DNA of 61,823 nt from Macrostomum lignano (taxonomy: Eukaryota), in NCBI GenBank assembly GCA_002269645.1, contig NIVC01000321.1:1-61823 (forward strand). Direction: 5' to 3'. The position numbers and the translations under genes are program-made. Under the pieces are notes generated by a model, which saw only the letters and a list, made by a program, of their open reading frames with translations, did not search any database and was not told the origin of the DNA. Every line of letters begins with the position of its first letter. The stretch's first letter is position 1. Shown here piece by piece: positions 4,528 to 57,130 of this stretch.

Positions 4528-4576
4528 CTGCAATTCGGAAATGGCTGTTTGTCTCAGATTCTTCTCGGGAGCAACT

Positions 4577-4890: not shown

Positions 4891-4892
4891 AG

Positions 4893-23970: not shown

Positions 23971-23989
23971 TTCTGCGCTGGAATGCGTT

Positions 23990-26900
23990 TTAATCTGCAG
24001 CGGATGCGGGCGATGCGGCTAGCATAAGTCTTGGCCCTAGGATTAATAACCAGCTCATTGTATCTGCTCGCACTGGCTCACGCCGAAGTGCACTTGCCTG
24101 GTTCGCTGGTGTCGTGACCGGTCCACCTCCTGGCAGCACCCCCGGGATCGCCAAAGGCCGGAAGTGCCATCGGAAGGCCGGCCTTGCGTCGTAGCCGTCA
24201 TCATCGTCATCATCGGCGTCGTCCTGGTCGTCCTCGGGGATCGGCGTCAGGGTCGCGGGTCCTGCGCCGTCGGGAACGTCAGGCGGTCGTTGACGCGTCC
24301 TTGGCTTGTCGACTTCAGGATCGGAAGTCCTCGTGTAGTCAGCGTCAGGCACGAGCAGAAGGTTCCGGCGATGGACGACTAGTTCGTCTCGTCTAGCTTT
24401 CGGGTTTGGCAGTCTCCGTCGAATCTTGTAGACGACCTCGCCCTTGGGCTCGACGACTTCATACAGTGCTTTGCGCGGTCGGTGAAACTTCGCCGCCTCG
24501 TCCGGTTCAAGCGCCGGATTGTTGAGGAAGACCAGGTCGCCAGGTTGAAGCCTCTTGGCGGCGGGCAGGTTCGAGTAGTGCTCGTCTCGCAGTTGCTGGT
24601 GCAGATGCAAGCGCTCCTTGGCTAGCTCAGTCGCTTCGTCCAGGCGACGTTGGAAGTCCTTGACGTAGTCGGGCAGGTCGGCATACTCGGGCAGCTTCTT
24701 CAGCGCGTTGTCGATCGGGAGTCGGAAGTCACGGCCGAACACCAGGTAGTGAGGCGTGAAACCGGTCACCGGGTGCACGCTGGAGCGGAGAGCCATCAGA
24801 CAGGCCGGGAGGAAGGTGTCCCAGTCGTTGTGGTTGCGCTCGAGCAGACAGGTGAGGACACTCTTCAGCTGCTTGTTGAGGTTCTCGACTTGTCCATTGG
24901 AAGCTGGATTGTACGGTGTTGTTGTCGTATGCCGAATGCCAAACAGGTCGCAGAACTTCTTGAAGGCCGAACCGGTGAAGTTGGTGCCTTGGTCGGTGTG
25001 GATCCAGCATGGTACACCGAACTCAGGGATGAAGCGCTCCTGCAGAAGCTTGATGACTGTCTTGGCTTTCTGGTTTCTCATCGGGTAGGCGAATGGATAC
25101 TTCGACGTCGCATCGCACAAGGTCAGGATGTAGCGGTTGCCGCTCTTGCTCTTCTGCGCGATTGGTCCTACTACATCACAGTGGATTCTACCCAGAACTT
25201 CGCAAACTGGGAAGCTCTGGACCGGAACTCTCTCTCGCCGTCGCGATTTACTTTCAAGGCAGGTGCGGCACTTACTGATGAGGTTTTGGTAGCACGGGCT
25301 AATCCGGGTCTCCAGAACCGTTCTCGTAGCCGCAGTAACGTCTTCGTCTCGCCGAGGTGTCCACACAGTGGCGAACTGTGGAGCTCCTGGAGCACCTGGG
25401 CGTCAAGGGCCTCAGGCAGAACAACCTTTGGCGGCTGCTGGCCATCGGACAGGTCAATCAGCAGCAGGCCGTTGTCCTCCTGCAGGTTCTCGTAGTATCC
25501 GAGCAGGTTCCGCTGCTCCTTCGTCAGGCGCAACCGGGCGTCGAACTCAGGCTTCGGGGCTTCGTCCTTGACCAGTTGAGCACGTAGCTAATGGCTCGGT
25601 CAGCGCGCTGGGCTTCAACGAACTGTTGGCGAGTCATCGGCAGCTTCAGAAAATCAGTGAGCACGTCGCGGCATGGCTGAGGGGTCATGACTACCGCAGT
25701 CTCCGCTTTAATGGCTCCAGGTCGATCACACGGCACCGTCTTGTCGGCGTCAGGATTAGGTCGCTCCGAGGGACTTTGTCTCACAACGTCGGCGTACGTC
25801 CGTTGATCTCGTTTCGAAGTTCTCATCGTCGCTCTCGTGACAGAAAATTCCGCAGATGGAGCAGCGCGCATGCCTCCACTGCCTAGCCCAGGCGACTCTT
25901 GGCTGTAGGGCGGGACGCAACACGTGAAGCACGCCTCGTCGCTAGCAGCCGTAGCCGTCGGCTCAGTCGTCGTCAATTCTGGGTGAGTCTTCTCCTGCAC
26001 TGGGCGGTGTCGCAAAGGGGGACTCGACTTTCCGCACAGGCGATGAGCAGCTGTCTGTCGGCCCGGGGGACAGAGCTTCGACCTTGCAGCTGGCGCGAGA
26101 TTCTGGCCTCTGTCAACACGGCGAGAAATCTCAGCGAAAGGCTCGGAGGGGTTGTAGTTAAATTGCTTGCCTGGAGTTGCGTTGCGGGCCGTCATCAGAA
26201 GGGCTGCTGGTGCGGTGGCCTTTGAATCTTGGTCCGTGGGCGTCTCCAGAGTCCGAGACCTGTAGTCTTGGGCATCGTCAAGGAGGTCTGTGTCCACAGT
26301 GGCCTCAAGGTCTTCGTCCAGGTTGGTCTCCAAATTGCAGCGGGCGGCATGGGCATCGCGGCAGAGGGCTGTTGTCGCAGTGGCCTCTGGGTTGTCGTCC
26401 AAGCCGGTCTCCAGGCGTTGACTACAGCGGTGGGCGTCGTGCTGGAAGGCTGCTGGCGCGGTGGCTTCCAGGTCTTCGTCCAGGTCAGTCTCGGCCTCCA
26501 AGCAGCGAGAGTGGACTGTCTTCAGGAGGGCTGCTCTAGCAGTGGCCTCGGGTGTCGGGTCCAAATCCGGTTCCAGGTCGTGGTCGTCACCGGGTCGGGC
26601 TGTAGAACCAGGTTGCTCTAGCAGTCGGCCATGCTCGAAGGAGATCGGCGGCGCCTCCGGTCTTCTTGACAGGGCATCAGCGTTGGCGTGGTCCTTGCCT
26701 TTGCGGTGGTTGAGCTGGAAGCGGAACTCGCTTAGGCGTTCGATCCAGCGGTCTAAAATACCTGTGGCCTGAGTCTGGTTCAGTAACCACAGTAAGGCCC
26801 GATGATCGGATCGAACTTCAAACTTCTTGCCAATTAAATAATGACGAAAATGTCGCATAGCGTCCACAATTGCAAGCAGCTCTTTCTTCGTGACCGTGTA

Positions 26901-29057
26901 GCGCTTCTCAGGATCGCGAAGTTTACGGCTAAAGAATGCAATTGGACGTTCGACACCGTCGGATTGCAGTTGTCCAAGGCAAGCGCCTATTCGAATATCA
27001 GAGGCATCCGTGTCGAGGACAAACTTCACAGCAGGATCAGAATTAAATTCAGGCAGAGCGAGAACTTCAGTAGAACACAATTTCTTCTTCAGAGTGTCGA
27101 ACGCTACCTGATGCTCGGGAGTCCAATGCTGCCGCAGGCTGCCAATGTCCTTTCGCGTCAGGGCATGCAGCGGCGCAGCCACTCCAGCGTAGCCGTCGAC
27201 AAACTTGTGGTAGTAATTGGCGAGGCCTAGGAATTGTCTCAGTTGAGTAACGGACTGTGGCACGGGCCAATCACGGATCTGCGCAATCTTGTCCTCACAG
27301 GTCTTCAGGCCGTCGGGAGTCACGACGTGACCTAAATAATGCAGCTCCTTGAGGAACGAATGACACTTCTTCGGCTTCACTTTGAGGTTTGCTGCGATGA
27401 TGCGCTGGAGCACGGTCCGCAAATTATCCAGCTGTTCCTCAAAGGTCACTGAGTGCACCACGATGTCGTCCATGTAGCCAAGCGCAGTCTTTGGCGTCAG
27501 GCGGTCCAGGAGCTTATTGATGCAACGCTGAAAGCTGCCGGGACTATCGTGGAGACCCATCGGTAGAACTTTAAAACAGAATTGGCCGCGGTCGATCACT
27601 GAGAATGCCGTCAAGTGCTGGTCGCAGTCGCGCAGCGGGATCTGCCAGAAACCTTGAGCAAGGTCCAAGCTAGAATACCACTGAGCACCACGAAGCTTCG
27701 CGAAGGTCTCTTGGATGTGCGGGAGCGGATACGGGTGATACACACACCTGTCGTTGAGAGCTCTGAAGTCGTGGACTAGTCGGATGTTGCCGTCCTTCTT
27801 GGGCACGATGAGCATTGGCGAATTGTAGCTCGAGTAGGCAGGGCGAATGATGTGCTTCGCCAGCATCTCGTCTAGCAGGGCGTCGAGCTTGTCCTTCAGA
27901 TGAGGCGGGATTCTGCGCGGTGGTAGCGCAACTGGTGTCCGATCTTTCAGGACGATCTCGTGGGTCACCAGGTGAGTCAGGCCGGCGTCTAGCAGGTGCT
28001 TGGGGAAGGCCGCTTGACATTCAACTAGTAGATCTCGCACTCGCTGATGTTGTTCTTTGGACAATTCGCTGTTGATCTCGACTTCATCTAGCCATGCTAT
28101 GCTTGACTCTTCAGGACTCTTCGACAGCTGTCGCACTTCAGGTTCGGGCGTCTCGCTCAAGTACATCAGGTCGGCAGTTCGGAGTGGCATCGCAACACCA
28201 ACACGGATACCGGCCTGCAAGAACACCTCGCTGTCGGCGGTGTTGACGACCTCAATGTAGCCGCGACCTTCAGGCATCGTCATCAGAGCAGGCGCTGCTT
28301 CCAGAGCGTTGCAGCTGGGATGCAGCCTCGACTTAACCAGCTCGACAATTGATGGCGATCCTCGATTCTCAGGGTGGCCGTCATCCAGTCTGACGGCAAG
28401 CAGCGCTGAACTTCTAGGCGGCAGGGTGCACTTCTCGGAGGTGTACACTCGGCGGGTCTGAAGCTCACGGCGCGAATAACGAACGGGGATGCACGTGCCG
28501 TTGTTGAACGTCAGCATTCCTTGAGCGAAGTCCAAGTTCTGGCAGTGCTCTCGCATAAACGATACGCCAAGCAATTTTTCACAATCGGAGACCGTCCGCG
28601 ACGACATCACCGAACTCCACCGGAATGGTCACCTTACAAGCAAGTGGGAGCTGCGTCCCATCATACATAGTTACGCAATCGGGAATAGCATGCGATATAA
28701 TACAACGAGGCATCCGACGTCTAATAGCGGCCCAGGTTGACGAACCAAAAAGTTTTTCCGGCTGCCGCTGTCTAGCAAGAAAGGGACCTCTCGACTCGCA
28801 ACTCGACCTGTGACGTACGGATCGGCCTCACGCGCATGGATTTTTTGATTCGGGGAGGTGTCCACGAAACCTCCGCACTCCGCGTCACTTACTGGCGAGT
28901 GACTGTCGGACTGGGCATTGGCGCCTGCACAGCCGACATCCTCTTCTTCTGGTGACCTCTCGGAGTCTGCCAAGTAACCTGGGCTTGGACCTCGCGGAGG
29001 GCGGTGCCGTTGTCGCTCTCCGCCTGGCCGTTTCCCTGGTTCTGGCGCATCGGGCAC
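23990..29057 (-). pseudogene. Gypsy pol (protease, RT, RNase H, long linker, integrase), several frameshifts (about 28750, 28612, 25555, 25330)
   Basis: LLDSGS; YMDDI; LDTDASD, ELLAIV, SDHRAL, NADALSR; H..CGHLG..CRTC, HCDVVG, HTDQG, NGQVENLN. Confidence 0.95.
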
Positions 29058-30058
29058 TGGGTGTTGCGATGACCGGGCTGTCCGCAGCTATAGCAGATTA
29101 TAGCTCTCTTCGGCGGACTGGCTATCTGCTGTTGGTCACGCTGCACCAGGTGATCAAGCAGTCGCTGCTGCTTCTCGATCAAGTCGGTTAGAGTTAGCAA
29201 GGCTTGGGCGGTGACGTCGGGCTTCGGGTCGCCGTCCTGCTCCCCGTCCAACATCCTAACCGGGGGTTGAGCGGTTCGCTGCGCCAATTCTTTGGCGCCT
29301 TCTAGTCGTCGTAGTTCTCGAATCGCAGCAAGAAGATTATTTGGGCGAACCCAGTACAGCCGTTCACGCAGATCTGGAGTCCGGATGCCAGCAAGAAATT
29401 GATCAGCGATCTCCTTCTCGCGGTCTTCAGGATGCATTCGAGGATACGCACGTTCACCAAGAGTTCTCAGGGCGTCAGCAAACTCTTCTGCTGACTCATT
29501 CTTGCCTTGTTGACGACGCCTCAACAGCTCTCTGTACTCATCAGCACCACCATGACGGGCAAATCGCTCAATCAGACGCTGCTTGACCTCCTCGTAGCTG
29601 GCAAAACGCGGAAGATTCATACCAAGCAAGGCAGGATACGCAGTCGCTAAGTCAAGACTCGCGATGAGGTGTTGCTTCATCTCGAACGGGTCGACGATGC
29701 GCTCCATCTCGCAACGCTGCTCGAACGCGGCAAGCCAGACATGAATGTCCTGACTTGGAGTAAATTTCACAGTTTTAACTTGTTTACTCACGGGCCGCTC
29801 CATCTGCTGCTGCAGAGCTGCCATCATGGTCCTCACGTCCTGGTGCGTGATGTTCCGGCCGATGTTGTCCAGGCCTTGCAGAAGCTCGTCTGGCGGGTCG
29901 TCGGACACGTCGCTTCTGGCACCTCGCCTCGGCGTCGGCTGCTGACCAAAGTCGTTGATCGCTGCTGCTGCTGCGGCGTCCGCTGCCGCAGGCCTCAAAC
30001 TGCTGATGTGCTGATCCAGCCGGCTGCTGCACCGGCTCTCGTCTCGCTCGTTGAACAT
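28889..30058 (-). CDS. Gypsy gag
   Basis: RQQGKNESAEEFADALRTL; CYSCGQPGHRNTQC knuckle; frame is open from the PBS. Confidence 0.92.
   Translation of the reverse strand: MFNERDESRCSSRLDQHISSLRPAAADAAAAAAINDFGQQPTPRRGARSDVSDDPPDELLQGLDNIGRNITHQDVRTMMAALQQQMERPVSKQVKTVKFTPSQDIHVWLAAFEQRCEMERIVDPFEMKQHLIASLDLATAYPALLGMNLPRFASYEEVKQRLIERFARHGGADEYRELLRRRQQGKNESAEEFADALRTLGERAYPRMHPEDREKEIADQFLAGIRTPDLRERLYWVRPNNLLAAIRELRRLEGAKELAQRTAQPPVRMLDGEQDGDPKPDVTAQALLTLTDLIEKQQRLLDHLVQRDQQQIASPPKRAIICYSCGQPGHRNTQCPMRQNQGNGQAESDNGTALREVQAQVTWQTPRGHQKKRMSAVQAPMPSPTVTRQ
28994..29036 (-). promoter_or_regulatory. -1 ribosomal frameshift signal (G GGA AAC plus downstream hairpin) at the gag-pro junction
   Basis: Heptamer 29036-29030 in gag frame; -1 frame gives GKRPGGE of the protease ORF; 6-nt spacer then stem GCGGAG..CTCCGC. 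Confidence 0.8.
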
Positions 30059-30129
30059 GTTGAACTCGTCGTAGTCGCTGGCCGATGTCGTTCTCGAAAG
30101 AGCGGTTAGCTTGGGTGTGTCGTAGTCGG

Positions 30130-30147
30130 ATCCCACCGCTGCCACCA
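30130..30147 (-). promoter_or_regulatory. Primer-binding site complementary to tRNA-Leu 3' end
   Basis: TGGTGGCAGCGGTGGGAT one base after the 5' LTR. Confidence 0.88.
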
Positions 30148-30148
30148 G

Positions 30149-31230
30149 TGAAATAGATGCTGATTTCTTCCCGGATTAGGCCCTTGTGGATTACCTTAAA
30201 TCTCGAGCCTCTTCAGAGGGAAGTTCTCTTAAATCTCTCAGTAGCGTAGGTAGTGCTGCCACCAGTTCCTTCAGGTCTCAGCCTTCGGTGAGGTGAGCTT
30301 CCCGTCGGAACAAAATAATGAAGTCAACAAACACAGCACTGCGTGCAGATTTAGAGCGCAACAAATAGGGCGTCTTGTCAGCAGTACCTGCCAGGCTAGG
30401 ATGGTAGAGGGAGGGCTGAGTTAGCCTCTCGTAGACTTGGGTTGACTTGGTCGGGTTTCAGTCGGAGCAATAGGAATAGAATCGATATGCGCAAAGGCTT
30501 GGACACTTGGGATTTAGTTACACGCAGACGTAGAACTCGAGGTTGAACAGAAAGAAGCCTCCTTGACGGAAACAAGGGGGAGAGAGCTCTTATTTATAGC
30601 TGGGAAACTCCCGCGCTCAAGACCTCGTGACTTGTTCTATTTTTAGAACTGACATCACTCGAGAATCTCGGGCAGGGTACAAGCGCACGGAAGACCTCGT
30701 GACTTGTTCTATTTTTAGAAATGACGTCACTCGAGAATCTCGGGCAGGGTACAAGCGCACGGAAGACCTCGTGACTTGTTCTATTTTTAGAACTGACGTC
30801 ACTTGAGGGTCCCCCGGCAGAGTGCACATGGCTGTGACTTAGTTGCTATTTTTAGCAACATGAGTCACTCCTCTCCTTAGAAAAGGGAGGGGTCCGAAAG
30901 CATGTGACTCATCCGGTAAACAGGGCCAGCAAGTGCAGTAAACATGTTTACTGCACTTTGAGACTCAGAGAACGCAGAAACTGTCATGTGACCAGCTCAC
31001 AAGACAGGGAGACAAAGACTGACGAAACAAGGACAGCCCGCAACAGAGAAGTTGCGGGCTGAGAAACGCAGGGCAACACGGGCAGAAGAAAGGGAGGGGG
31101 CAGCAACAGACAGCCAAGAGGAGGGAAGCGGGAAGCTGCCCAGCGGCAGACAGCAACCCAGGGCAAGGGCGAGGGCAAGGGCAACTGCTAACAAAGTGGG
31201 ACGCCTAACATTAACTAGCGGATCACTACA
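30149..31230 (-). repeat. 5' LTR (1082 bp, three copies of the 72-bp motif)
   Basis: Differs from the 3' LTR by one 72-bp unit and 9 transitions counted by eye. Confidence 0.97.
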
Positions 31231-32690
31231 CTGCTCTAATTAGTTTCCCATTCTCACCCTTTTCTCTGGTAGTTTTAGTTATAATAATATTAGTTTTTAT
31301 TATATATTTCAATGATATTAGAACTCAGTAAAATACAATAGCCTAATATCAAGAAATGATATCCTATCTTTGCCTCTAACTATATTTTGATTTTCCTAGA
31401 TCTACTAGTTACATTTTAAGATTTAATTTTCCAAAAGGTCTAGAAATTCAATTGTTAGATATTGTTAGAAGATCTAGAAGTCAGCTAACAAAGACCATTG
31501 ACTAGCAAGGTAGCCAGTTTTCTATATATTGCAGATCACTTTTATAATTGCACAAGGGCTTCAATAGCTTTAAGAAATGCTTCTAGCTTAAGTAGATGCT
31601 GCAAATTAAAAGCAATAAAAAAGCAGACAAGTACAATGATGGTATCCATCATATAAATATAAATCATTTAAATCTTTAACCAAAGATGCTAAGAAAAAGT
31701 TAATACGTGCCTTTTTGAACATATTATTAGTACAAATAAAATAAAAAATAAGCTCTTTTGATGACTTCCAATATTCAGGAATAATAAGAATAATAAAAAT
31801 AAATAACATAATTTATGCTTTGTTTTGCTAAACAAATAGTATAGCAAATTTCTGATTCATTTTAATATAATATTTAATAAATTGCATGATTACATAGACA
31901 CACATACGCACATGGACAAACCATTTTTAGTATATGGATCTCACTAGTTTAGTCTATTTGAATTTGACTTGGCTCATTACTATTTTTACTTCATCTATAG
32001 AATGAGAAATACAATAAAGATAAAATTACTTTTGGGACAGCAATTATAGTTACTATTAATTAATGTCTGAAAAAACTATGAAGTATAGTAGTACCTTACA
32101 AAGACTAAAGAAATGAAGTGTAGCCACTGAACTTTGGTGGTAATCAAGGGCATTCTACAGGCCATTAGTGCACTTGCACTGGGGTTCTTGCTGCCACCAA
32201 TGTTTAAGAACAAAAACTTAGAGTCAAATCACATAGTACATTTGCCGATGCACAATGGCTGACAAGCAATTATATATAGCCAGTGAAAGGTTAAAATGAC
32301 TCACCCAACTGGGGTGGCAAGTGGCATGTACAGAGTAAAGCAAGATGTAAGTAATTCGAGAACAGCTCCCACACCTGACAGCAAAAATCATACACAATGT
32401 CACACTAATAAATCTTTGTTTATCTTCAAGAGCTTATGAAAAAAACATATTCTACTTAAAGTATGATTGTCAAAGTTTATATTGAAAATTTTCATCTAGT
32501 TGCTCTTTAACTCATTAGGTTAGCTATTCCTTAGCTACTGATAAAGAATCTGTGAATATTAGTTAATAACTAATTCAGTACATTCAGTACTTTTTAAGTT
32601 TGCCAGGCTTGATTTTAGCCACGATTAAAACAAAATAAAAAGTTTCCTGTAAAACAAACTTCTTCTGCTCCAGACCAGTTGACTGTTGCC

Positions 32691-34665: not shown

Positions 34666-35455
34666 TGGTTTTGACAATCAATATGAGAAAATGGACAATC
34701 AAAATGAAAACAGCCGTAGATCTGCATGCAGCAGCTCAGCTCAGCTTCGCAGCAGCTGCGGCTTAGGCCATAGACTTTTTGACGATCGAAATGAGAATTG
34801 GACAATCAAAATGGCAACGGAAGCAGTGTGCGCGTTTATTTGAATGAAATTTTAACAATAGAAACGAGAAATTGACAACAGAAATGGCAACACAGTCAGA
34901 AAAATGATGGAAACACAGCAGTCGTGCAGCATAGGTTCAGAACTCCTGCCCAGCAAGGCAGCGTCCAAGCTGACGGAAGCAGCGCAATTCCCACGCACCT
35001 GCCTTGTCCGGAGTCACGGCTTCAGGCAATGACTCACGCGCCACTCTCTCCAGCAGCATGTAACGCCACTCTTCCTGGTTCACGCCTTCTGGGGCAACTG
35101 CCTCTTCCCCAACGATGTCAGGCTGCGCCAGTCTGCTTTTGATCTTGGCCTTGAGGCAACTGTTGGCGAATTCCGAAGGGTTCAGAAAAGGTGAATATCC
35201 CGGAAGAATGCGGATGGACACAGCGTGCTGCAAACTGGAGAGATGGCTGAGAAAGATGGCTGGCTAATGCTTAAATATGCTGCCTCGCTAAACTAACCGC
35301 GCGTTGCCATTTTGATTGTCCAATTCTCATTTCGATCGTCCAAAGTCTTTGGCCTAAGCCGCAGCTGCTGCGAAGCTGAGCTGAGCTGCTGCATGCAGAT
35401 CTACGGCTGTTTTCATTTTGATTGTCCATTTTCTCATATTGATTGTCAAAACCAA
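34666..35455 (-). mobile_element. Internally deleted IS630/Tc1/mariner-type transposon with about 165-bp TIRs
   Basis: TIR pair at about 34666-34830 and 35299-35455; remnant ILPGYSPFLNPSE matches the LPPYSPDLNPIE motif. Confidence 0.82.
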
Positions 35456-35492
35456 ACCAAATATTATCATTAAATCTGCCATATTGCCGCAG

Positions 35493-35797
35493 GTGATCCG
35501 GCTTCCCCACGCTCTCCCGGAGTCCTTGGTCCGCCAGCACACGGTCATCGCTTTCTGCTCATCGCCCGAGCTAGCCGAAGATCTCAAAGCCAAAGGCGCT
35601 ATGGATGCTGGCGGAGCCGACCTGCTTGGCAAACTGGAGACTGGCGTCTACATTCAAGAGAACTTTGATTACGTCATCTGTCATCCAGACTTTTGGCCCA
35701 GTCTGTTGAAAGCTAGAAAACTATTGAAGGACGCGATGCCTGCCCAGAAATCGCCTCAGATATCTGAAGATATGGAGTCTGCTTTGATGCTGTACAA
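35493..35797 (+). CDS. MRPL1: uL1m exon 2
   Basis: Acceptor gccgcAG; VIAFC..GAMDAGGADLL..FDYVICHPD; donor AA|GTAGGT phase 2. Confidence 0.9.
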
Positions 35798-36179
35798 GTA
35801 GGTTAATAATCGCTTCTGTGTGTTCTTAAATTTTGAAGTAGTCACCCGTTACAAAAGTATATGCCAAGGCTTTAGTTACAATATATACTTGATTTGTAAC
35901 CAAAAGGAACAGAAATAAATAAATTAATTATTTTTTCTAGGGGTACATCAATGCAATATTTTTGTTATTAGGGACCAAAGTGATATACGATATTATACAT
36001 ATCTGAAGCTTTTTTTCAAGTTTTATAAGAACGTATTAAATAATATTTAACATTACTTGTCTGAGGTTAACAGAGCATTTTCAAAACTCAAGTTCCACTT
36101 TTCGATTTTGATTTCTAACTCATTAGAAATTAGCTAAATTAGCTCTGCTGACTTAATATAAGAATTTTTGTTTTAATAT

Positions 36180-36715
36180 TCACAACCTGCTACTAACAGT
36201 AAACCGTACATCGATACTACGAGTATCAACGAAACCCACTGGCTACCAGGGAGTTCTGTGTTTGGGAAGGTGGAAATCAATTGTATCAGCACTCTCTGGC
36301 CCAGGTGCTTGGCAGATGCCTCAAGGACCGAATCAGGCACTGTGTTGATAGTTTTTACTGGCAATAATTACTGTGCAACTTGCATAGAAAACGGCACAGA
36401 AGTCTGCGCCGTTGAGGTGGTTGTCGTTCAGGTACAGCTTGGTACATGCAGGCGGCCTTCATGGTGTAGTTCAGGCTTCGGAAGTTTTACTCTTTGCAGT
36501 CCAGTACGCAAGCAGAGTGTTTCCTTGTCCTGCAGTGACCGTCGTAGCATCTCCACAGCTCTTGGACCAACTGCTCGTGGTGTCCTCCCAGAAAGTGGCC
36601 ACGCAGCCGATAGCACCTTCCCCCTCGGCTGCGTTCCTTGCCGGATAGGCACAAGTTTAACCACTTCTGAGACTCTTTAAGAAGAGTTTTTCGTGGGCAA
36701 TGATGTGCTTTTTTT
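36180..36715 (-). pseudogene. Second, internally deleted copy of the viral L-like sequence
   Basis: Shares CACGCAGCCGATAGC with about 41740-41760 and CCTTGTCCTGCAGTGA and GAGGTGGTTGTC with 39.9-40.05 kb; junction at about 36545-36560. Confidence 0.75.
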
Positions 36716-37216: not shown

Positions 37217-39425
37217 TTAGATTGTCAAAAGTTGATCAAGATGCTCGGGTGGCGCCATGTATTTCGCGGCAATGAGTTGTTGTTCTGCCGCAAATCTGTA
37301 GTCGACGGTGACTCTTGAGCTGTTGTCTCTTATCGTGGCCAGCGATGAGTCTGTTAACAGTCTAAACTTTTTTATCCACCCACGGCTTGGTGTTCGGCTA
37401 AAAAAATTGAGCAGGAAAGGAGGCTCCACGACGAAAGGATTTCCCTTTGGTGGAAAACAGACCATAGCTGGCACTATTGCCTTCAGGCCAGAAGGCGAAC
37501 ACTAGTGTTACAGCCATGGTTTGCTTGCTCGTAGCAGAAGAGGCGACGGGGGCGTGCTGTTTCGCTGTCGCCGTGGAAGCGGCAGCCGGGGCGGGGGCGG
37601 TAGAGGTGCTTTCGCGGGAGCCTGGCAATCAGTTCCGTCCGGGAGCTCCGGCTGAACGAGTTCGCGGCGAGCCAGTCAGGCAGCCCTCTCGATTAGGGCC
37701 TGGCAGTCACCATCGGCCAAGCCGCGCAGACGGCCCTAGTGCGGCCATTCGACGAAGTCTGGCCAGTCACCGTGCTGGTTGGCCAGGTCTTATTACTGCC
37801 GGGTGAACAGCCCCGTCCTCGAGCAGATCTTGTCGACTGGGTTCGACGGCGGGGTCCTGGCTAAAGAACTGCTCTGATACAGTCTTCTGCTTCAGAAAAA
37901 TTTAGAATAAATGATACTATGCAGATCAAGGAATGACACGAAATAGACAGATGACCTAGATGACCTAGCATTTAATTGGCAAAATGGAGAATAAAAAGAC
38001 GGCAAAAACACTAACACAACACAAAATACAAAATTAAGCATGTAAGTAAAAAAATTATAACCAGCATGAAAAATATACTCGTACGTAATGTTTATAATGT
38101 TCTTTAAATCTATATAAACCGATAACAGCTTCACAATTTTTTTTAAAGATAAAGGCGCTTATGCTTCTTCGGAATTTAGTAACATTTCCTATTACTATAA
38201 GTACAGCAAAGCTAGAAATGAAAAAAGCGTAGCAAAGCGTGGTGCGGGAACTTCAAATTAGGATTTTAAAGATACAAAGCATTTTCTGTGGAAAAAGAAA
38301 ACAGAGTATACAGCTAGAGCTGTTTATTGACGTAAATTTGTTTATTGAAGATAGTTAAAGTCACTTCAATAGTTTAATACATATAAGCACTGCTGCACGC
38401 AGACTCTGACGTCTCATCTATGTCCATTCCATCTATGTCTTTTCGGTCGCTTCTGTCGTCTTTTTGCAGCATGCTGTTTTTTCGAGCCTGGCTTTGACTG
38501 ACACTCGGCAAATTCTCGTTCTTTGCGCCATGTGCAGAAGCGCTGGAATCAATCATGCTGAGACGCTTGAAAGTAGTTCGCGAAACTCTTGCAGCTGGAA
38601 TAGAGCTGGCCGCTGCTGAGCCAGAATCACCTACGCCAGCACTCCTTCTATAAGGAGATAATAATATTAAAAAATGCACATGTATTCAACTCACTAAATC
38701 TAAAACGTGCTCAGATGACTGGTACTGCGCAAAAATCGCATAATCAGCACAGCAGCTAATGGGCCAGAAGGTTGATGTTGGTCTCTGGCTTCAGGATTCA
38801 TCAGTGCAAGCAGCCGCTACAATTTAGAAGCGACTCCGTTCATCTGATCAGTGAAGTGACTCTGATGATCCTCAAGGCGGCTGCACCTTATAGCCAGTTC
38901 ACTAAGAGTTGTGAGCTAAACAAATAAAATGCCTCGAAGAGAGTCCAGTGGGACATCCACAACTGCCTGGAATTGCTCCCCTAGTATTTTTTTGCAGCTG
39001 GTCTGAGCGGGTATGCCGGCTCTGGAGCAACAACAGCCGCAGTGGCGACTTTCTCTGCCACAGCGGCTCTGCTCAGCGTTGGCTTTGGTGTTGGCATTTT
39101 GTCGCTGAGCGCGACAGTTGAAGCCCTTTCCACTGCCACTGAGGTCTTAGGTATAGTAGAATCATTGGTAGCTAAAGCATCTAATGCAGGAGCAGCCGCT
39201 GGCGTCGCTGGATCATTCACCGACGTCGCAGGACTCGCAGGTGCAGCCTTCTGAATCTTGGTCAATGGCGTCGGATATTTGTTACTCGGTAGTGGCAACA
39301 ACTGATTTTTAGTGTCCGGTAAAACTGTGTCCGAGATCAAAAAGCGGAATTGTGGTTCTCCTCGAAATCGGCTGTCTGCTCAGAGTAGAAGCCGTCTGTG
39401 TATGAGGCTGAAGCCAGTTGCGCAT
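37217..39425 (-). pseudogene. Decayed three-exon orphan gene (about 39425-38695, 38647-38381, 37886-37217)
   Basis: 47-nt GTGAGT..TTATAG intron at 38648-38694; second intron GTATTA..CAG joins in phase (AT|A); Pro/Ala-rich, then coiled-coil-like, then globular segments; in-frame stops. Confidence 0.55.
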
Positions 39426-39824
39426 GCTGTGGTTGTAATAACAAAATAGACGTAAAACTTACTTACTTACTCTTACTCGTAGACGTAAAACCTTAGGGTT
39501 ACTTGGATTTCGAAAACATCTCAAATCAAACTCTTGCTCCACTTACTCGTAATTTAGATTGGTACGCACGGCGCACCTGTAGAACGTCAAATTAGGTTAA
39601 ACCTCTTGGCTGCACGAGATTGAGAATCAGTGAGGTGCAAGGTGGCGTGATCAGTGTACGCACTGATAAAAAAAAACTTGGAGTGGGGCAGACTGGAAAG
39701 GTTGAGGCTGGGTGCGGGAGAAAAAAGGCACGATTACACAAGTAAAAATTGTAGGTTAAAATCGATTAAAATCAGTAGGGTTTTAATTAGGCAGTGAATT
39801 AAATAAAAACCGGTAGGTTTAAGA

Positions 39825-42050
39825 TGCCTTAAGGCGAATCAGGTGCTTGACAATGGGTACTGGTAATGCTTGCTGTGCACCGTGAGTAGAAAATGGCTCA
39901 GAAGTCTGCGCCCTTGAGGTGGTTGTCATTCAGGTACTAGTACATGCATGCAGCCCTGACTACGGCCTTCCGGGCGTGGCTTCAGAAGTTAGACTTTGCA
40001 GTCCAGTTCGCGGCAGAGCTTCTGACAAGCAGTTTCCTTGTCCTGCAGTGAACGTCGTAGAAGTTCAAGTAGCTTCGGCGCTTTGAGCCTCATAGGCTTC
40101 CATTCTCGTCCTGTATGGGAGCATACAAGTCGGCCGAGTTGAAAGTGATGTATGCCTCTTCTGTGGCTTTCTGCCTAGCCCGGCTGGCGATAGGATCCGG
40201 CAGTGTGTGGTTCACAATGTGCAGACCCCACTTTTCGTGGTGACGCTTGCAGTACGCTGGATGTTATTTAGGTGTGCGCGTCGCTGCCTACTCGCGGAAT
40301 GCGCGCATAGCGCTCTTTTTCAGAAGATACACGGCTGATGCGAAATTAGCAGCTTTGTCCACTATCATGTGACTATCATTTGGCACCTCTCCCTTGAGCC
40401 AATTAGGTATACGTGTACTAGTGATCTCAATCAGGTTCTCAATCAGTGATTATTGTGTCGTATGCAATTTGAAAGCTCGGCTGGTATGACAGGGTTCCAC
40501 TGGCATTCGTGCAGGATGTGCTCAGAAACAGCGGCTGATGCTTCGGAGAAGTAGATCTCGAAGGCCCGTTTGAATTCAGGAGCCTTGGCCCCTCGCTTCA
40601 GTGCACGAGCCAAGGCCAAGTCACGACCGTGTGAAGACACTCTAGCAACAGCCGCGCCGCGTAGAAGTTAAAAATGCTGCGGGTCTGTTACTCTGTTCAT
40701 GGAGGCTGGTGATTCTGCGGCTAAACTCTCAATCCGCCTTGGCATACACCTTCATTGGGACCATAACGTCGCTCCCGCCTACGAAGTGGCGGTTTAGGTA
40801 GATGAAGTTTATGCCGCTGTAGATGGTTTTTGACACCTCCACTGCGTAGTCCGACCTTGCGTAGACGTCGACAGTGGCCTGTAGAATGGGTCAGTCACCC
40901 GTTGCGCCTCTGCTTTTGACCGCAGGAGTGGAACGGCTAGGAGCGCAAAGTCTATCATACACAGGGCTAGTGCATTCTCCTGCGGCAGGAGAAGGCCCTT
41001 GTCTTTGGCAGTCCGGACTATGTAGCTTAGCATGTTTGCGTGGTACATTGTGTCACATGTCGGTGTCCAGCCCTGGAAGGTGCTATAGTTCTGTTTACTA
41101 GCCACGCTTGGTAATATTGAGAGTGATGTCGCGCCAGAACCTTTCCAGGTCCCAGCCAGAGCCGAGCTTTGTTATACATGGTTGATCCCCCGATTGTGGG
41201 ACAGAATCACTTAGCAGTCTGCAACCAAGTCACACAACAGTATGACAGTGTATCTGCAGGTGGGCACCGGGTCGAAACCGGCAGGCGGCACGTAGTCTTG
41301 TCCTAGAGAGCTGCGTGAACGCTGCTATCTCGTGGAACGTCCGCTCCATGAACTCTGGCGTCCTGGTCCTCTTTATGCTGGAGGCTCACTGGTGCAGATG
41401 GTGATCAGTCTGGGTGTTCAGCTCACGAGTGATATCGTCGTGACTGAAAGTCTCCCTGGCCTTGTCTTCCGGCTTCGTGTTCTCTGCTTTAGCAGCCATT
41501 AGAGCGATGTTGAGCTTGCCAAGACGGTGGCCGATGTCTGCTGCGGGCTGTATCTGTTATATTGTGCACTTCTTAGATAGGATGTTTCCGTACGTCAGGC
41601 AATAGTTCAGCTCGCACCAAACTTCTCGGGGTAGCACTTGGATTTTTGAGAGGTTAGAATAGGCGTCAGTGTCTGCCAGGGCATGCGTCACATCCTGGTA
41701 GGTCTCGGCCCAATTGCTCGTGTCCTCCACCAAAAAGTTGTCACGCAGCCGATAGCGCCCCCACTCGGCTGCGTCTGGCAACACCAGCTTTGAGACTAAG
41801 TCGTAGCCTTTGTTTGTCTCGTAATATTGGCAGTCCGTGGGCAGTGACATGTGCTAGGCTCAGCATCTGCACATACCACATAAAGCACACAAGCTCCTTA
41901 GGTTTTTAGAACATTTTGGCCATCGTCTTGTCGAACATTACCTCTGGGTCGATGTCTGGCGCAGGAAACACAAACACGTAGAATATGTAGGCCAAGTCAA
42001 GCTTTCCGCGGTCGGACAGGTCTAGCTAGCTGGGCCTGTTCGGGCGCCAT
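39825..42050 (-). pseudogene. Endogenous viral element: RdRp core of a negative-strand RNA virus L protein, Qinviridae-like
   Basis: In order: KAENTK..KARETFSHDDITRE (motif F, about 41421-41490), ILLCDL (A?, about 41230-41250), W..ITL..TKRG..STFQGWTPTCDTMYHANML (B, about 41030-41130), ALCMIDFALL (C, degenerate IDD, about 40950), SKTIYS..FIYLNRHFVGGSDV..PMKVYAK (D/E, about 40745-40835); many stops and frameshifts. Confidence 0.7.
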
Positions 42051-43213
42051 GTAGAAAAATAGCATTGAATTATTTGATACACTTGGATTAAAATTAATTA
42101 ATTGGAATTGGAAGGAACAGTGAGTAGCACGGGGTCTAAACGAGTGTATTTATAATACACTAAAGGAAAAAAGAAGTTGAGCGCGCAATGGAGGAATGAG
42201 GTGAGATTGAAGAGCCAATTAGAAAACAGCAAGTGATAGATAAAGTTCTGAAGTGGACTGAAGAGTGGAACTTAGCTTTACTTGTCCTTGTTAGTAATAT
42301 TAATGGATAGTAAAATAAAATATCCATCCTAAACTAAAAACTAAAAAACTTAAAGATTAAAAGTGAGCAATAACTTGTATGCTTTAAAAATTGTCTATAA
42401 AATAATAATTTACGTACAGCCATGAACTGTGCAACAAAGAGGCCATAATATAGCTGAGGGGCTGCCAAACCTAACCGAAGTTTTTCTGAAGCTTACACTG
42501 GTATAACCCCTTTATAGCTTGGTAAAAAAGAAATTTAGTGTCATATAGAAATTTAGTATAGTTGAATTTGATGTAAATTATTGTATTAGGTCAAGAACCA
42601 AAGAGTAGAGACCTCTTGTTTAAGAGTCCAATACTCTAACCACCATGCTCTAGGCTAGGCCCACAAGTCCCTTAAATTTTATACTCAGTATAGTAGACAA
42701 TATATTGTGCGAATATTGCTATATAATGCACAAATATGCGCATGCATGACATGGCCTTATAATCCAGACATATGCCTAGCATAGTAAAATACTTGAAAGA
42801 AAATAATCTTACATTGATAAAAGTCTGATATTGTACCCTTAATGCTGCTTAGAGCCATACTACTGCGTGACAGGTAGTGGTATGTTAAGGACATGTTTCT
42901 AATAAGAACCAACAAATCCTTCATATTGTATATCTTGTATCTGCATTCGGTCATCCACAAAATCTTCCAGATAATCTATCTGCATTATCTATCCATTACA
43001 ATCGGTCAGTCATCTATTGGCAAACGAATAAATCATAATAAAACAAAGAGCGCTAACATGTACATGTTTCATAATTGACTAATCAACAGAAGTCAAAATG
43101 CAATTGCACTTTAAAAATTAATGGGAATTGGAACACTACTATCGAACATTTATCTCTAATATGAGGATTTATGTATCTACAAGTTTTGAGCACTTTGTCA
43201 TCCCACACCGCAG

Positions 43214-43532
43214 ATATGGCATACCCGCTAAGCTGACCCAGGCCGGGGACCTGCCAGACCGAGCCCAGTGCCGCGTGCCCTTCGGTCTGCTGGACTGGCC
43301 CGACTACAACTTGAACGAGAACCTCTCAGCCATTGTAACCGGCCTGTTGAATGAGAAACCAAAGAAATCCAATCGTGAATTCATCATGTCAGTCTCGGTC
43401 ACGTGTCCTCCGTCTGACGAGCTGTTCCTACTGGATTGGAAACCGTACACCATTGCGGCAGATTCTTCAAGCAATGCTGCTGACAGGGTAGCACCGGATA
43501 CGGCTGATGCTGTTGCGGCTTCTGCTAGTTAA
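43214..43532 (+). CDS. MRPL1: uL1m exon 3
   Basis: Acceptor accgcAG; FGLLDW..ENLSAIV..EFIMSVSVTCPPSDELFLLD; total CDS 1104 nt, in frame; AATAAA 43596-43601. Confidence 0.9.
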
Positions 43533-43604: not shown

Positions 43605-43800
43605 AAATCTCAGGTGAGATTTGAAAATAGACTCAGATAAATCTCGCAGTTGAGATTTGAGAATATACTCAAATAGATCTCGCAATTGAGATTTGAGAAT
43701 AGACTCAGATAAATCTCGCACTTGAGATTTGAGAATAGACTATTCAGGTGAGATTCAGGTGAGAGATAAATCTCAGGTGAGATTTAAGAATAGACTTTGA
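43605..43800. repeat. About 40-bp tandem repeat (CTCGCA..GAGATTTGAGAATAGACTC)
   Basis: Direct inspection, about 4-5 degenerate units. Confidence 0.85.
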
Positions 43801-44439: not shown

Positions 44440-44504
44440 GTAGTTTTTTTAGTGTTTTTCTATTATTGTTTCGGTCTTTGTTTGAAAGCTAAAGTCTTTG
44501 TAGC

Positions 44505-45135
44505 TTAAATGGTGTCACATTGTCAGTCTTTGTAGCTAAATGTGATGTCAGATTGTCAGTCTTTGTAGCTAAATGATGTCAGACTGTCAGTCTTTGTAGC
44601 TAAATTTGATGTCAGACTGTCAGTCTTTGTAGCTAAATGTGATGTCAGATTGTCAGTCTTTGTAGCTAAATGATGCTTTAGTCTTTGTTAGTCTTTGTAG
44701 CTAAATGTGATTTCAGATTGTCAGTCTTTGTAGCTAAATGATGTCAGATTGTTAGTCTTTGTAGCTAAATGTGATATCAGATTGTCAGTCTTTGTAGCTA
44801 AATGATATCAGATTGTCAGTCTTTGTAGCTAAATGATATCAGATTGTTAGTCTTTGTAGCTAAATGATATCAGATTGTCAGTCTTTGTAGCTAAATGATA
44901 TCAGATTGTTAGTCTTTGTAGCTAAATGATATCAGATTGTTAGTCTTTGTAGCTAAATGATATCAGATTGTTAGTCTTTGTAGCTAAATGATATCAGATT
45001 GTTAGTCTTTGTAGCCAAATGATATCAGATTGTCAGTCTTTGTAGCTAAATGATATCAGATTGTCAGTCTTTGTAGCTAAATGATATCAGATTGTCAGTC
45101 TTTGTAGCTAAATGATATCAGATTGTCAATGTTTG
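44505..45135. repeat. 31-33-bp tandem repeat GATTGTCAGTCTTTGTAGCTAAATGATATCA filling Hv1 intron 1
   Basis: Direct inspection, about 20 units. Confidence 0.97.
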
Positions 45136-45231
45136 TAGCCTAATTTCCCACAATAAAAAAGCAAGTAATTACATGACGAATCATTTAGTGCGCAATCTAG
45201 AGTTAGAGTTACTCACGCCGTTTACCCGCAG

Positions 45232-45586
45232 ATCGCAGTCATAGTCCTGGTGCTACTTGATGCAATAATTGTGGTCGCTGAGTTGGCCATCGATCTCGGC
45301 TTGCTCAGCTCCTCCGGTCGCGAGGGCCTCGAGTCCAGCGCCTGGCCCCACGTGTTGCACTCGTTGAGTCTGACAATTCTAAGTCTGTTTCTACTAGAAG
45401 CAATGCTGAAATTGTACGCTATGGGTTGGAAAATTTTCCACCACAAGATGGAACTGTTCGATATGTTTGTCATTGTGGTGTCCTTCGGTCTGGATGTGGC
45501 CAGCGCCGTGCCCGGGTCGCAGCTCACCGCCCTGTTCGGCCTGGTGGTGCTGCTCAGGCTGTGGCGTATTGTCCGCATTGTGAATA
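45232..45586 (+). CDS. HVCN1: Hv1 exon 2 (S1-S4)
   Basis: LVLLDAIIVVAELAID (selectivity Asp); LLRLWRIVRIVN (RxWRxxR..N); donor A|GTGAGC. Confidence 0.95.
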
Positions 45587-45659
45587 GTGAGCTGGAGTTC
45601 CTTGTTTAAGGGGGGGGAATTCTTTCTTTTTCAATCGCATAGTAGCCGCCTACACGACT

Positions 45660-46190
45660 CTCCTTAAAAGAATCGTCCTTAAAAAATCGCCCTTTTAAAG
45701 AGTCGACTTTATAAAAAATCGCCCCTATAAAAATCGCCTCTATTTAAATTGCCCTCCATAAAGAATCACCCCATAAAGAATCACCCCTCAAAAGAATCGC
45801 CCCTCAAATAAATCGCTCTTCAAAGAATTGCCCTTCAAAGAATTGCCCTTCATAAAATCGCCCTTCAAAGAATCGCCATCAAAAGAATCGCCCTCAAAAG
45901 AATCACCCCTCAAAAGAATCGCCCCTCAAATAAATCGCCCTTCAAAGAATTGCCCTTCATAAAATCGCCCTTCAAAGAATCGCCATCAAAAGAATCGCCC
46001 TCAAAAGAATCGCCCCTCAAAAGAATCGCGCTTCAAAAGAATCGCCCCACAAAAGAATTGCTCCGCAAAAGAATTGCTCCGCAAAAGAATCGCCCCTCAA
46101 AAGAATCGCCCCACAAAAGAATCGCCCTCAAAAAAATCGCCCCTCAAAGAATCGCCCTTTAAAGAATCGCCCCTGAAAAGAATCGCCCCA
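45660..46190. repeat. Minisatellite AAAGAATCGCCCCTC filling Hv1 intron 2
   Basis: Direct inspection. Confidence 0.95.
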
Positions 46191-46208
46191 ACCCTTGCGC
46201 ACCCGCAG

Positions 46209-46483
46209 GCATCGCCCTCTCCATCCGGCTGCAGGGCAAGAAGGCCCTGGTCAGGCAGTCGGAGCTGCGGGAAGCTGCCGAGAGTCGCTGCCAGGAACTC
46301 AATAATCGAATCGCTGAACTCAAAGCTGGACTCAGCGATGCTCTAGACCTGCTGCAGTCAGTCGGCAAGGATCCATCCATAGCATCGGGGCTTGTGGACG
46401 CTAAAAAGTTACAACAGTTGCAGGAGCTGCTGGACCTGACGGCTCCCGATGCTGAAACAGAAGTCTTGGGGCGAAATGACTGA
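46209..46483 (+). CDS. HVCN1: Hv1 exon 3 (coiled coil)
   Basis: Acceptor cccgcAG phase 1; IALSIRL..ELNNRIAELK; TGA overlapping AATAAA; total CDS 885 nt. Confidence 0.9.
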
Positions 46484-46951: not shown

Positions 46952-47047
46952 ACTAGAGACTGGTGTCTACATTCAGGAGAACTTTGATTACGTCATCTGT
47001 CATCCAGACTTTTGGCCCAGTCTGTTGAAAGCTAGGAAACTATTGAA
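46952..47047 (+). pseudogene. 96-bp displaced copy of MRPL1 exon 2 interior
   Basis: Matches 35633-35728 with 4 transitions. Confidence 0.93.
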
Positions 47048-50132: not shown

Positions 50133-52114
50133 AAGCCTTCGGGCCTCAGGTCTCAGAAATAAATCAATTAGAGTCCTGGCCCCCCACTCCTGTCAGATGG
50201 TCAGCCCCATGGTAGCTTGATCGTGTGGCGAGCAGTCTAGGTCCTATAGCTAAGAGAGGGATAGCGAGAGACAAGCAGGGAGAATTTTGAAGGTAGAAAT
50301 TAGCTAATCCGCAGACTAAGCTAACTCGCTGCCACCAGCCCGTGCGTCCTGGCTCACCACACCGGGGCTCTCGAAATCGGGCTTCCGACTAGAGGGGGCT
50401 TTGCATTTACCTGCCAACTAGTGTCTTTTTGCTGTCAATCTCGAAGTCATAGCCGATGATAAGGGACACTGCTGGGACTAGATCGCATTGGCCATGCAGG
50501 TACAGAGGGGACTTGTGCAGGGGATTCTTGCAGTGGCGAGTCTATGGGGTAGCTACATGTACTATTACATTGCTAAATACGAGGAATTGTACTTTTGGCC
50601 TTTAACGCGCCAACCAGCCTCTCGTAGCGCTGATGATAGACTAACTCGAACTTCAGAGACCTCGCACGATTCATTACCCGAGCCGCTTGGCGAACCTAGA
50701 GTGCACAAAGTACATCTCTGGTGCCGATTCTGCACTTCTGGCAGTTTTGCTCACTGATTTGATTGATTGATCGACTGAGAACTGCTTTGCCATTGGTCCA
50801 CTGTGACCGGCGCCTACTAGCTTAGCTATTCATCTGAGCCATCGGCGAACAAAGAAATAAAACCGATAAAAATAACTGTTAGATTTAACCTTCTCCTCAA
50901 ATCACTTCACACTTCAGATTGAATTGGAGTTTCAGACTACTAGAAGTATTATTGAATGACTTCTGCCTCGATTACAGCACTACTGAACAAAATGAGCAAA
51001 AGTGTGCGCCTAATTCAGCTACTGAAACAGGGGACAGATAAGGGATCACCCAATCAAGCAAGTCTAGGTAGCCCCTCACCCAACCAATCAGAAACTCAAC
51101 AGCCGGAGACCAGGAAATCCACAGTGACCGAATCGGCTTAGTGCTTCGCAGCTGTAGATTCGGGATGATGCTGACACAATCTTCGCTGATAGCTAGCAGG
51201 TGATGATCTTAACTTTGATGTTCGCTGCTGATGACCGGGGGACTCGTCCTTGATGATGATGGGGGAAGTCGCAGTCCTGGGATCAAGAAACGACGGTCGC
51301 GCTCCGGGATGCCTCAAGCTAGGCTAAGGTCCCAGGAGGTGAGCGCAAGTCCGGAAGGTCGGAAGGTTGAGGTCCGAGTGGGCCAAAAACTCCGGTTTAA
51401 ATAGCCGCCAACTGGACCGCAGTTTGTTATAACGGAACACGTCGATTCTGATTGGCTGAGCCGTTTTGTTAAAATGAGCGCCGAATTTTCTGATTGGCTA
51501 AGCTTGTCGCTACCCAGAATCACGTGACCGAGAGATCCTATCAGTTCCCACAGGGTCGTAAAGAGATGACAGGTGCGGCCATAAATCACTCAAAATCGCA
51601 ACAAAATGATTTATGACTTTTCGCGTAGGATTGACAGAAATTAATGAAAAAATATACATTAGAAAGCTCTTATTAAATAGAAAGTGAAGATAATGAAGAG
51701 AAATCGCTAATCGCTAATCCCAAAGTACTTTTAGGGGTAAAACGTATAGCTGTCAAAGCTGTCACACGCTTGAGTGAATCCGAACAATAAGCTCTGACCT
51801 CATAAATCTTGATGGCCTGTCAAACTGATGCGAAAAAAGCTACCGCCCGCATCCTCTCAGACCATCTGGCGCCCGTTTCAACACTGAGTGAGGCGCAGGT
51901 GGCTGTCAGACCAGCTTCGAAAGCGATGATTTATGACCCAAAAAGCAATGCCTATGTTATTATGACTACTAGTATGGCCAGACATTATATCTAGTATAGA
52001 TTCTATGACTATTCGCAGAAAAATGATAAAATGCCCACTGCCCACTGTTAGTAGGCAAGTAAGTTTAGAGCCCATGTGCTAGCGCGGGATTTGGGAAAAA
52101 GTGCGTCCTCATCA
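50133..52114 (-). mobile_element. About 2-kb LTR-like dispersed element, copy 2 (no MITE)
   Basis: Highly similar to 12784-15272. Confidence 0.6.
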
Positions 52115-52924: not shown

Positions 52925-53739
52925 TTACATTTTAAAAGTGCAGTTAAAGTTTTTGCATGAATACAATTTGCTGGCTTCTGTCATGCGTTGATAAGCTTGG
53001 CAGAGCTGTTTAGAAGCGTTTTTTGGAGCCGCCTCTGCTCCGCTGGCGAACCGCCACTGGTGTAGCCACGCGCTAGAAGGAGGCTCATCGAAAAACTGCA
53101 CGTGAATTTGCTTCGAGCAGAAGCTCTTGGTGCAGTTTGTTCCGCGCCGGGGTAGGCAAACCATCGCCGGCCACCAGTTTTCTCCATCTGTTGGCCAGTA
53201 ACCTAGTACAAGCGATCCAGGTTGAATTTTCTGACGCTTGGCTGCACTATCGGCTGGAGCTCGAGCTGGCGGTCGCTTTCTAGCTAGGCGACGTCCTGAT
53301 CCTATGTGGACAGCGACATCAGCGGAAGCGTTGCCAGCGGCGGCATCGGCAGCGGAGGCTGAGGCGACGCCATCGCCAGCGGACGCGGAGACAACAGCGC
53401 CATCAATGTCGTTATCGCTGTTGCCGTACAGCTGGTTTACTATACCATTGAGATCCTCCGAGTCAAACGGCGAGCAGGACGGCGTCCGACAGGACGGTGT
53501 CAAGCAGCACGGCGCCAGCCACGGTGTCGCTAGGCACAGCGGCGCCAGACACGGTGGCGCCAGGCACAGCGTCGCCAGGCACAGCGCCACCAGCGGCAAG
53601 CAGGACGGGAGCAGTTTTTGCCATCGGCACGGCGGAGGAGCCCTGGACGCAGTCGCTGATGGGCCCGCAACCGACACGGAGTCCATGTCAGCAGACGGCA
53701 GATTTTCCATCCTATGCAGAATGCTGTCCAGGTCGTAAT
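52925..53739 (-). CDS. Crypton-like gene, last exon: low-complexity linker plus PWWP domain
   Basis: Acceptor ttAG|AT phase 1; GSLVLGYWP..NWWPAMV..IHVQFFDEPPSSAWL. Confidence 0.8.
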
Positions 53740-53960
53740 CTAATGGAGGAAAGATAGAAAGTAGCAAGTTTTTTAAGCGAATTCCTTTAACAAGGAGAAA
53801 AAAATTTAGAACTGACCATCTTTTTTATTGCTAAGGTAAATTTTTTTGGTCATTTCTGACAAAATTAATAAATTTCTTTGCATTTATAGCGCATTTTAAT
53901 CGTACGGGTTATTCGCAAATTCTAATTTCCCTCAAATGCTAGCAACCATGCTGTACTCAC

Positions 53961-56790: not shown

Positions 56791-57130
56791 TTTTTCAATA
56801 AATGTTTTATCTATTGGAATTGAATTGAATTGAATTAAATAAGAATTGAAGGAATGATGCGAAATATAAATTCGAGAAATAGATTAAATATGCAAGAAAG
56901 ATGCAAGAAAATATGCTCAAAAATGGGGATGAAGTCAGTCGTCAATAATTCAAAGAGAAGATGAAATTTCATTGGTCGCAATCTTGACTCCACTATGGTG
57001 ACTAATTAAAGTTTATAATTTTACATATTTGGAACTGCTTGACACGATTCTTTACAATAATGGCGCAATCATAAGTTTGGTGCAACAAATTTGCTTAGAT
57101 AGGTATCTTCCACCATGAACCACCTATCAC

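Follow-up and report, generated by a model that had tools for sequence, protein, structure and literature searches.

The stretch analysed here, referred to below as the window, comprises 61,823 nucleotides (nt) of Macrostomum lignano contig NIVC01000321.1 (assembly GCA_002269645.1, positions 1 to 61,823 of the forward strand). On its minus strand lies a GC-rich island that carries the remains of a gene for the L protein, the RNA-directed RNA polymerase (RdRp), of a qinvirus-like virus. An initial annotation, made from the letters of the DNA alone, had described a Qinviridae-like polymerase fossil at 39825-42050 and had raised the possibility of its past exaptation. The features of the relic are the following.

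39822-42025, minus strand: remains of a qinvirus-like gene for L (RNA-directed RNA polymerase), termed copy 1, delimited by L-protein homology and by copy 2
40645-42025, minus strand: RdRp core block of copy 1, corresponding to L residues ~357-868
39929-40257, minus strand: distal block of copy 1, corresponding to L residues ~1076-1195
36314-36635, minus strand: shorter second copy of the relic (copy 2), in the same orientation, recognised by blastn to copy 1

Copy 1 spans residues ~357 to ~1195 of the ~1,800-residue L protein and constitutes one broken gene fragment. Homology to L proteins is limited to 39929-42025, and the last ~100 nt, down to 39822, display only nucleotide homology to copy 2; the limits drawn in the initial annotation were thus good ones. 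In base composition, the copy forms an island of 52-54% GC within AT-rich flanks of 33-43% GC, with sharp steps at both ends. The island lacks a long open frame. Its longest stop-free stretch measures 120 codons, and a stretch of at least this length appeared in 60% of simulations (first-order Markov model, same composition). Stop-free lengths are therefore at chance level, and the length of the reading frames alone provides no evidence of a gene.

Homology to qinvirid L proteins

All homology searches with the window's own sequence used pieces of the island as they stand, and no reference motif letters cited in the initial annotation served as a query. An exhaustive HMMER (phmmer) search with one 120-codon stop-free piece against 1.84 billion representative proteins returned 11 matches. 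Four of these are proteins of 1,671-1,878 amino acids (aa), each with a single match at residues ~678-763 and E-values from 4e-7 to 7e-4; the only L-sized significant matches in this collection were qin-like. Among these, P0010 represents the RdRp of Beihai sesarmid crab virus 4, a virus assigned to Yingvirus beihaiense (Qinviridae, Muvirales), and P0004 passes the Pfam model Mononeg_RNA_pol. Three further matches are short fragments. The other four (P0001-3 and P0006) consisted of repeated short multi-stretch matches to the out-of-frame Ser/Thr-rich start and were set aside as compositional; P0001 and P0002, both scanned with Pfam, contain no polymerase domain, and P0002 is a Listeria-Bacteroides repeat protein.

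BLASTP linked separate pieces of the island to successive parts of the L protein. The piece upstream of motif F matched P0010 at L residues 448-527 (30% over 80 aa, E 3e-7), the motif F piece at 544-579 (44% over 36 aa, E 3e-7) and the motif D/E piece at 758-802 (42% over 45 aa, E 3e-10), and the motif B/C piece matched residues 679-732 of P0004 (44% over 54 aa, E 2e-12). When L proteins were compared with the whole window by tblastn, collinear minus-strand matches were obtained only at ~39.9-42.0 kb, covering L residues ~358-1188, with best E-values of 2.5e-23 and 1.4e-18; in the whole window so searched, no further L-like DNA was found.

The island was then aligned with a custom frameshift-aware protein-to-DNA aligner, with reversed proteins, shuffled DNA and the plus strand as controls. 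Against five L proteins, the RdRp core reached 33-38% identity and 52-55% positives over about 400-440 codons, with scores of 289-408, and the distal block reached 29-43% identity with scores of 65-93 and was collinear in five of five cases; control scores were 34-52. Altogether, collinear alignments to the island were obtained for 15 qin-like L proteins; they extend over more than 400 codons at identities of 28-39%, with scores of 199-420, i.e., 4-10 times those of the controls. The Qinviridae-like L polymerase fossil of the initial annotation is borne out by these collinear alignments together with the named matches that the window's own sequence produced. Of the checks it had suggested, frameshift-aware alignment gave scores far above the controls, and tblastn gave collinear L matches.

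The motif blocks F, A, B, C, D and E are collinear and in order on the minus strand, and the motif strings quoted in the initial annotation occur on this strand of 39825-42050 in the order given there. Of the 79-81 columns that are invariant among five L proteins, the relic keeps 67-72%. By motif block, the numbers kept are 13 of 14 in F, 1 of 6 in A, 5 of 6 in B, 2 of 5 in C, 3 of 5 in D and 5 of 6 in E. Conservation is thus clear in blocks F, B and E and partial in D, whereas A and C have suffered the erosion to be expected of a fossil; the initial annotation had itself placed A in brackets. Twelve of the 15 relatives have IDD as their motif C triplet and three have MDD, and IDD in place of GDD, SDD or GDN is described as the hallmark of qinvirids (PMC9927876). 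Motif C of the relic keeps the Ile-Asp start; the four letters read there in the initial annotation do occur, although the catalytic pair of Asp residues is no longer intact.

Scanning IMG/VR with the L alignment brought eleven more L-segment contigs into the comparison set, and exact look-up named three of them as Wuhan insect virus 15, Hubei qinvirus-like virus 1 and Wenzhou qinvirus-like virus 2, all of them classified Yingvirus species. IMG/VR peptide-pattern scans with two window pieces gave no match. Word-indexed searching of 5.8 billion proteins was equally fruitless, both with the 120-aa piece and with a single-frame piece of 251 aa (stops written as X); with an alignment of L proteins as the query, the word-indexed search returned three proteins only.

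The nearest relatives of the relic are one IMG/VR contig and Wuhan insect virus 15, both at 39% identity, the latter over 406 codons, followed among the named viruses by Hubei qinvirus-like virus 1 (35%), Beihai sesarmid crab virus 4 (33%) and Wenzhou qinvirus-like virus 2 (30%). Known L proteins share 32-49% identity among themselves over the RdRp core, compared with 28-39% between relic and virus. The relic is therefore no closer to any sampled virus than these are to each other, which argues for an unsampled lineage. In a neighbour-joining tree built from identity counts and midpoint-rooted, with no outgroup and no support values, the relic formed a separate deep branch inside the span of the classified Yingvirus species, bounded by Wenzhou qinvirus-like virus 2.

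Decay, second copy and genomic neighbourhood

The L gene has lost both ends, amounting to about 355 residues at the N-terminus and about 600-700 at the C-terminus. According to the ICTV profile, the qinvirid L protein combines the RdRp with a polyribonucleotidyltransferase (PRNTase) domain related to its Mononegavirales counterpart (PMC10721934); copy 1, whose distal block ends near L residue 1195, stops short of most of the PRNTase domain. The RdRp core contains 3-5 frameshifts and 4-5 stops, and the distal block 0-1 additional frameshift and up to about 4 additional stops. There is also one larger internal deletion of roughly 120-140 codons, accompanied by many small insertions and deletions, and the two alignable blocks are separated by ~390 nt where the L protein has about 250 residues. 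Owing to these truncations, frameshifts, stops and the deletion, the relic encodes no polymerase and no long protein.

Copy 2 is 0.32 kb long and matches copy 1 in two stretches, the 5' part and the 3' end, at 72% and 80% identity, respectively (blastn). Compared with copy 1, it is truncated and has lost about 1.6 kb in a single internal deletion, and it has no protein-level signal of its own. The copies lie 3.2 kb apart on the same contig at a pooled Kimura two-parameter (K2P) distance of 0.26. They have a non-natural 3' end in common, and the differences between them are spread evenly over the three codon positions (14, 16 and 12; p = 0.70, in a test of little power), which together suggests that the sequence was duplicated after integration and then decayed neutrally. 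The two copies have unrelated flanks. An origin of copy 2 as a spliced retrocopy of copy 1 was ruled out, there being no GT-AG on either strand at the junction.

The other annotated features of the window belong to the host and its transposons.

35385-35798, plus strand: exon-like piece of a uL1-family gene (ribosomal L1, mitochondrial or bacterial type), matching Pfam Ribosomal_L1 positions 27-133 at E 2e-5, below the curated cut-off
43122-43529, plus strand: second uL1-family exon-like piece, tentatively of the same gene, matching Pfam Ribosomal_L1 positions 148-193 at E 0.0075, below the cut-off
45169-45606, plus strand: host exon of a voltage-gated proton channel (Hv1-like), matching Pfam Ion_trans at E 6.5e-9 and PDB 5oqk, 'Voltage-gated hydrogen channel 1', at E 8.4e-21
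5659-9567, plus strand: element of the long interspersed nuclear element (LINE) type, with a 915-aa frame containing endonuclease and reverse transcriptase, followed by an RNase H frame
21261-31232, minus strand: young Gypsy-like long terminal repeat (LTR) retrotransposon with open gag (zf-CCHC), reverse transcriptase/RNase H and integrase frames

The LTRs of the Gypsy-like element (21261-22272 and 30149-31232) are 98.7-99% identical. As a whole, the window represents transposon-rich eukaryotic nuclear DNA, and the island is contiguous on both sides with host DNA, the LINE, the Gypsy-like element and the Hv1-like and uL1-like exons all lying on the same contig. The two uL1-like pieces cover complementary parts of the Ribosomal_L1 profile. 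The first also matches 50S L1 and 39S mitochondrial L1 in the PDB, and the second has no PDB match. Since both relic copies lie between these pieces on the other strand, an antisense position of the relic in an intron of a uL1-like gene is likely, though tentative.

Several further features were recorded around these genes. A 96% identical copy of part of the first uL1-like piece occurs at 46952-47047, and a coiled-coil-like piece at 46163-46480 (plus strand) may be the C-terminus of the Hv1-like protein. Between the relic copies, a patch of 61-64% GC at 37300-37900 has no Pfam match and no similarity to L. A weak DDE_3 transposase-like relic lies at 34940-35263 (minus strand, E 0.0014), further reverse transcriptase relics occur in the window, and an open frame with a PWWP domain at 52928-53767 (minus strand, E 2.6e-6) may be a host gene or part of a transposon. 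Repeats include a dispersed 1.9-kb repeat (50133-52047 and 12784-14686, direct, 92% identical), a 98% match between 57123-57349 and 12383-12609, tandem arrays at 44493-45139, 45662-46189 and 43611-43741, with units of 31 nt in ~20 copies, 15-16 nt (higher order of 107 nt) in ~30 copies and 36 nt in 3.6 copies, and, within 15.6-17.5 kb, inverted or tandem 160-nt repeats near 16-17 kb.

Origin of the island

We read the island as an endogenous viral element, that is, a fragment of a qinvirus-like L gene that entered the nuclear genome and has since decayed as neutral DNA, and we place the probability of this reading at about 0.9. Part of the L gene of a negative-strand RNA virus resembling qinviruses would have been copied into DNA and inserted in a eukaryotic nuclear genome, presumably in the germline, as the initial annotation had also assumed in speaking of an invertebrate germline. 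Reverse transcription and insertion may have been carried out by a host retroelement, and reverse transcriptases of the LINE and Gypsy-like types are present in the window. Copy 2 would have arisen from copy 1 after integration, probably by local duplication and subsequent deletion.

A number of observations weigh against this reading. The island ends show neither a recognisable target-site duplication nor a poly(A) tail, so that the mechanism of insertion can only be inferred. Pfam searches with eight as-is pieces, at E-values up to 10, gave nothing relevant, and the ~390 nt between the two alignable blocks have no convincing match to anything. The placement in Qinviridae rests on distance counts and on the midpoint-rooted neighbour-joining tree, which carries no outgroup and no support values. 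Pfam and structure prediction lend no support of their own: AlphaFold2 models of a 98-aa piece alone and of a 120-aa piece with a three-L alignment reached a predicted local distance difference test (pLDDT) of 39 and 48.5, respectively, too poor for a fold search. A phmmer search of the PDB with four pieces returned chance matches only, with no polymerase among them.

The silence of Pfam has to be set against its performance on the viruses themselves. It was silent on three of the four full-length qin-like L proteins scanned, including the classified qinvirid. The initial annotation had regarded the absence of an RdRp hidden Markov model (HMM) or structural hit as refuting the polymerase; taken in this sense, such an absence would lead to a wrong rejection, as most of the full-length L proteins scanned are missed in the same way. 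Because Pfam is blind to most qinvirid L proteins, screens based on HMMs alone miss such relics, a caution that applies to Pfam-based screening for qinvirid relics in general.

The empty Pfam, PDB and two word-indexed searches, along with stop-free lengths at chance level, could also mean that the motif-like strings arose by chance or that the island is a decayed non-viral transposon, and a multi-copy pattern with an internal deletion is transposon-like. A decayed transposon appeared as likely as a virus after the first searches and was dropped once the homology to L had been shown: the collinear match to 15 qin-like L proteins extends over more than 400 codons and scores 4-10 times as high as the controls, which leaves both chance and a non-viral transposon with a negligible probability. 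That the sequence is viral and yet not integrated, owing to contamination or to a chimeric assembly join, is very improbable. RNA-virus sequences do occur in assemblies, but an RNA virus would be absent from a DNA assembly unless reverse transcribed, a replicating virus would keep an intact L frame instead of less than half of L full of breaks, and a second copy at a K2P distance of 0.26 lies only 3.2 kb away in the same contig.

The initial annotation had pointed to an ATG at 42050, behind an AT-rich stretch, as raising the possibility of past exaptation, so that the locus would be a virus-derived protein-coding gene starting there. The ATG exists; however, it does not share the frame of the first L-homologous codon and opens no more than 17 codons, which leaves exaptation unsupported. 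Several frameshifts and stops interrupt the core, the motif A and C blocks are eroded, more than half of L is gone, the 120-codon longest stop-free stretch does not exceed chance, and the differences between the copies are even over codon positions. An exapted gene is scarcely credible on these grounds.

A role that requires no protein deserves somewhat more weight, although we still consider it unlikely. The relic, inert as a gene, might serve as an antisense template for small RNAs and thus as a heritable memory against qin-like viruses, of the type of PIWI-interacting RNA (piRNA) or small interfering RNA (siRNA) that has been proposed for other endogenous viral elements of arthropods. Transcribed within a host transcript of the opposite direction, it would yield RNAs antisense to the L mRNA of qin-like viruses; as regards origin, this agrees with the reading favoured here, from which it departs only in present function. 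Endogenous viral elements feed small-RNA pathways, as is known from work on mosquitoes, the two nearest host genes are encoded on the strand opposite to the relic, which apparently sits between exon-like pieces of one of these genes, and the surrounding region is rich in transposons. On the other hand, at 28-39% amino-acid identity to every known relative, its nucleotide complementarity to any sampled virus is nil, and its placement in an intron hangs on two sub-threshold Pfam matches. If true, this would be direct evidence that a qin-like virus had infected the host lineage itself rather than some parasite or meal that it contained. Returning to the decayed viral insertion favoured here, the relic most likely has no present function and otherwise resembles any dead endogenous viral element, giving no indication that it codes for a product.

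Comparison with known viruses and endogenous elements

Compared with the L proteins of Yingvirus, the relic has the same motif order, and its GC content of 52% falls within the 42-59% range of viral L segments. Unlike them, it is DNA in a host genome and comprises under half of L, with frameshifts, stops and deletions. A more distant relation leads to the L proteins of Mononegavirales: a profile of four qin-like L proteins matched PDB 8kdb chain A, 'RNA-directed RNA polymerase L', at E 4.9e-5, and the Pfam domain Mononeg_RNA_pol is carried by the L-like proteins P0004 and P0013. The relic is connected to this structure only through the qin-like intermediates, as the relic pieces themselves match no solved structure.

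Qinviridae, whose bisegmented genome encodes N on the S segment, are known almost only from metatranscriptomes. The ICTV profile gives their virion, replication and true hosts as unknown (PMC10721934), and trypanosomatids are stated to be the only confirmed qinvirid hosts (PMC11108086). An integrated L fragment would be a physical record of a qin-like virus having replicated at some time in germline-accessible cells of the host lineage. The relic also adds one deep branch to a thinly sampled family, as well as evidence of host association.

Other fragmented qin-like L sequences were noted in public data, namely L002 (GCA_964197005.1, OZ077899.1), L014 (Logan SRR9875064), L015 (JGI 3300072388) and P0012 (Trichuris muris, UniRef A0A5S6R637). 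L002, at 4139-5506, is located on a eukaryotic scaffold beside a Sushi-domain gene and shares 35-44% identity with qinvirid L over the longest aligned segment (L residues ~405-600). One short qin-like open reading frame falls in a cluster with a Trichuris muris protein whose annotation reads 'reverse transcriptase domain-containing'. Nucleotide similarity to the window is absent from L002, L014, L015 and the Trichuris muris protein A0A5S6R637 alike.

Among endogenous elements, those derived from bornavirus-like L likewise represent an L fragment of a negative-strand RNA virus in a host genome. Some of them keep long open frames and have been discussed as exapted; unlike these, the relic contains no frame above chance length. 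Closer counterparts are the qin-like endogenous element EVE7 of Camponotus floridanus (PMC6540820), qin-like endogenous elements of Machilis (PMC6955108) and arthropod qin-like elements noted by Shi et al. 2016, according to the account given in PMC6955108. All are of the same kind as the relic, i.e., RdRp-derived qin-like fragments in animal genomes, the likeness being one of description and not of compared sequences. The initial annotation was fair in calling the lineage poorly sampled, but qin-like endogenous elements had already been published; with these on record, the relic of the Macrostomum lignano contig adds a further member to a known kind.

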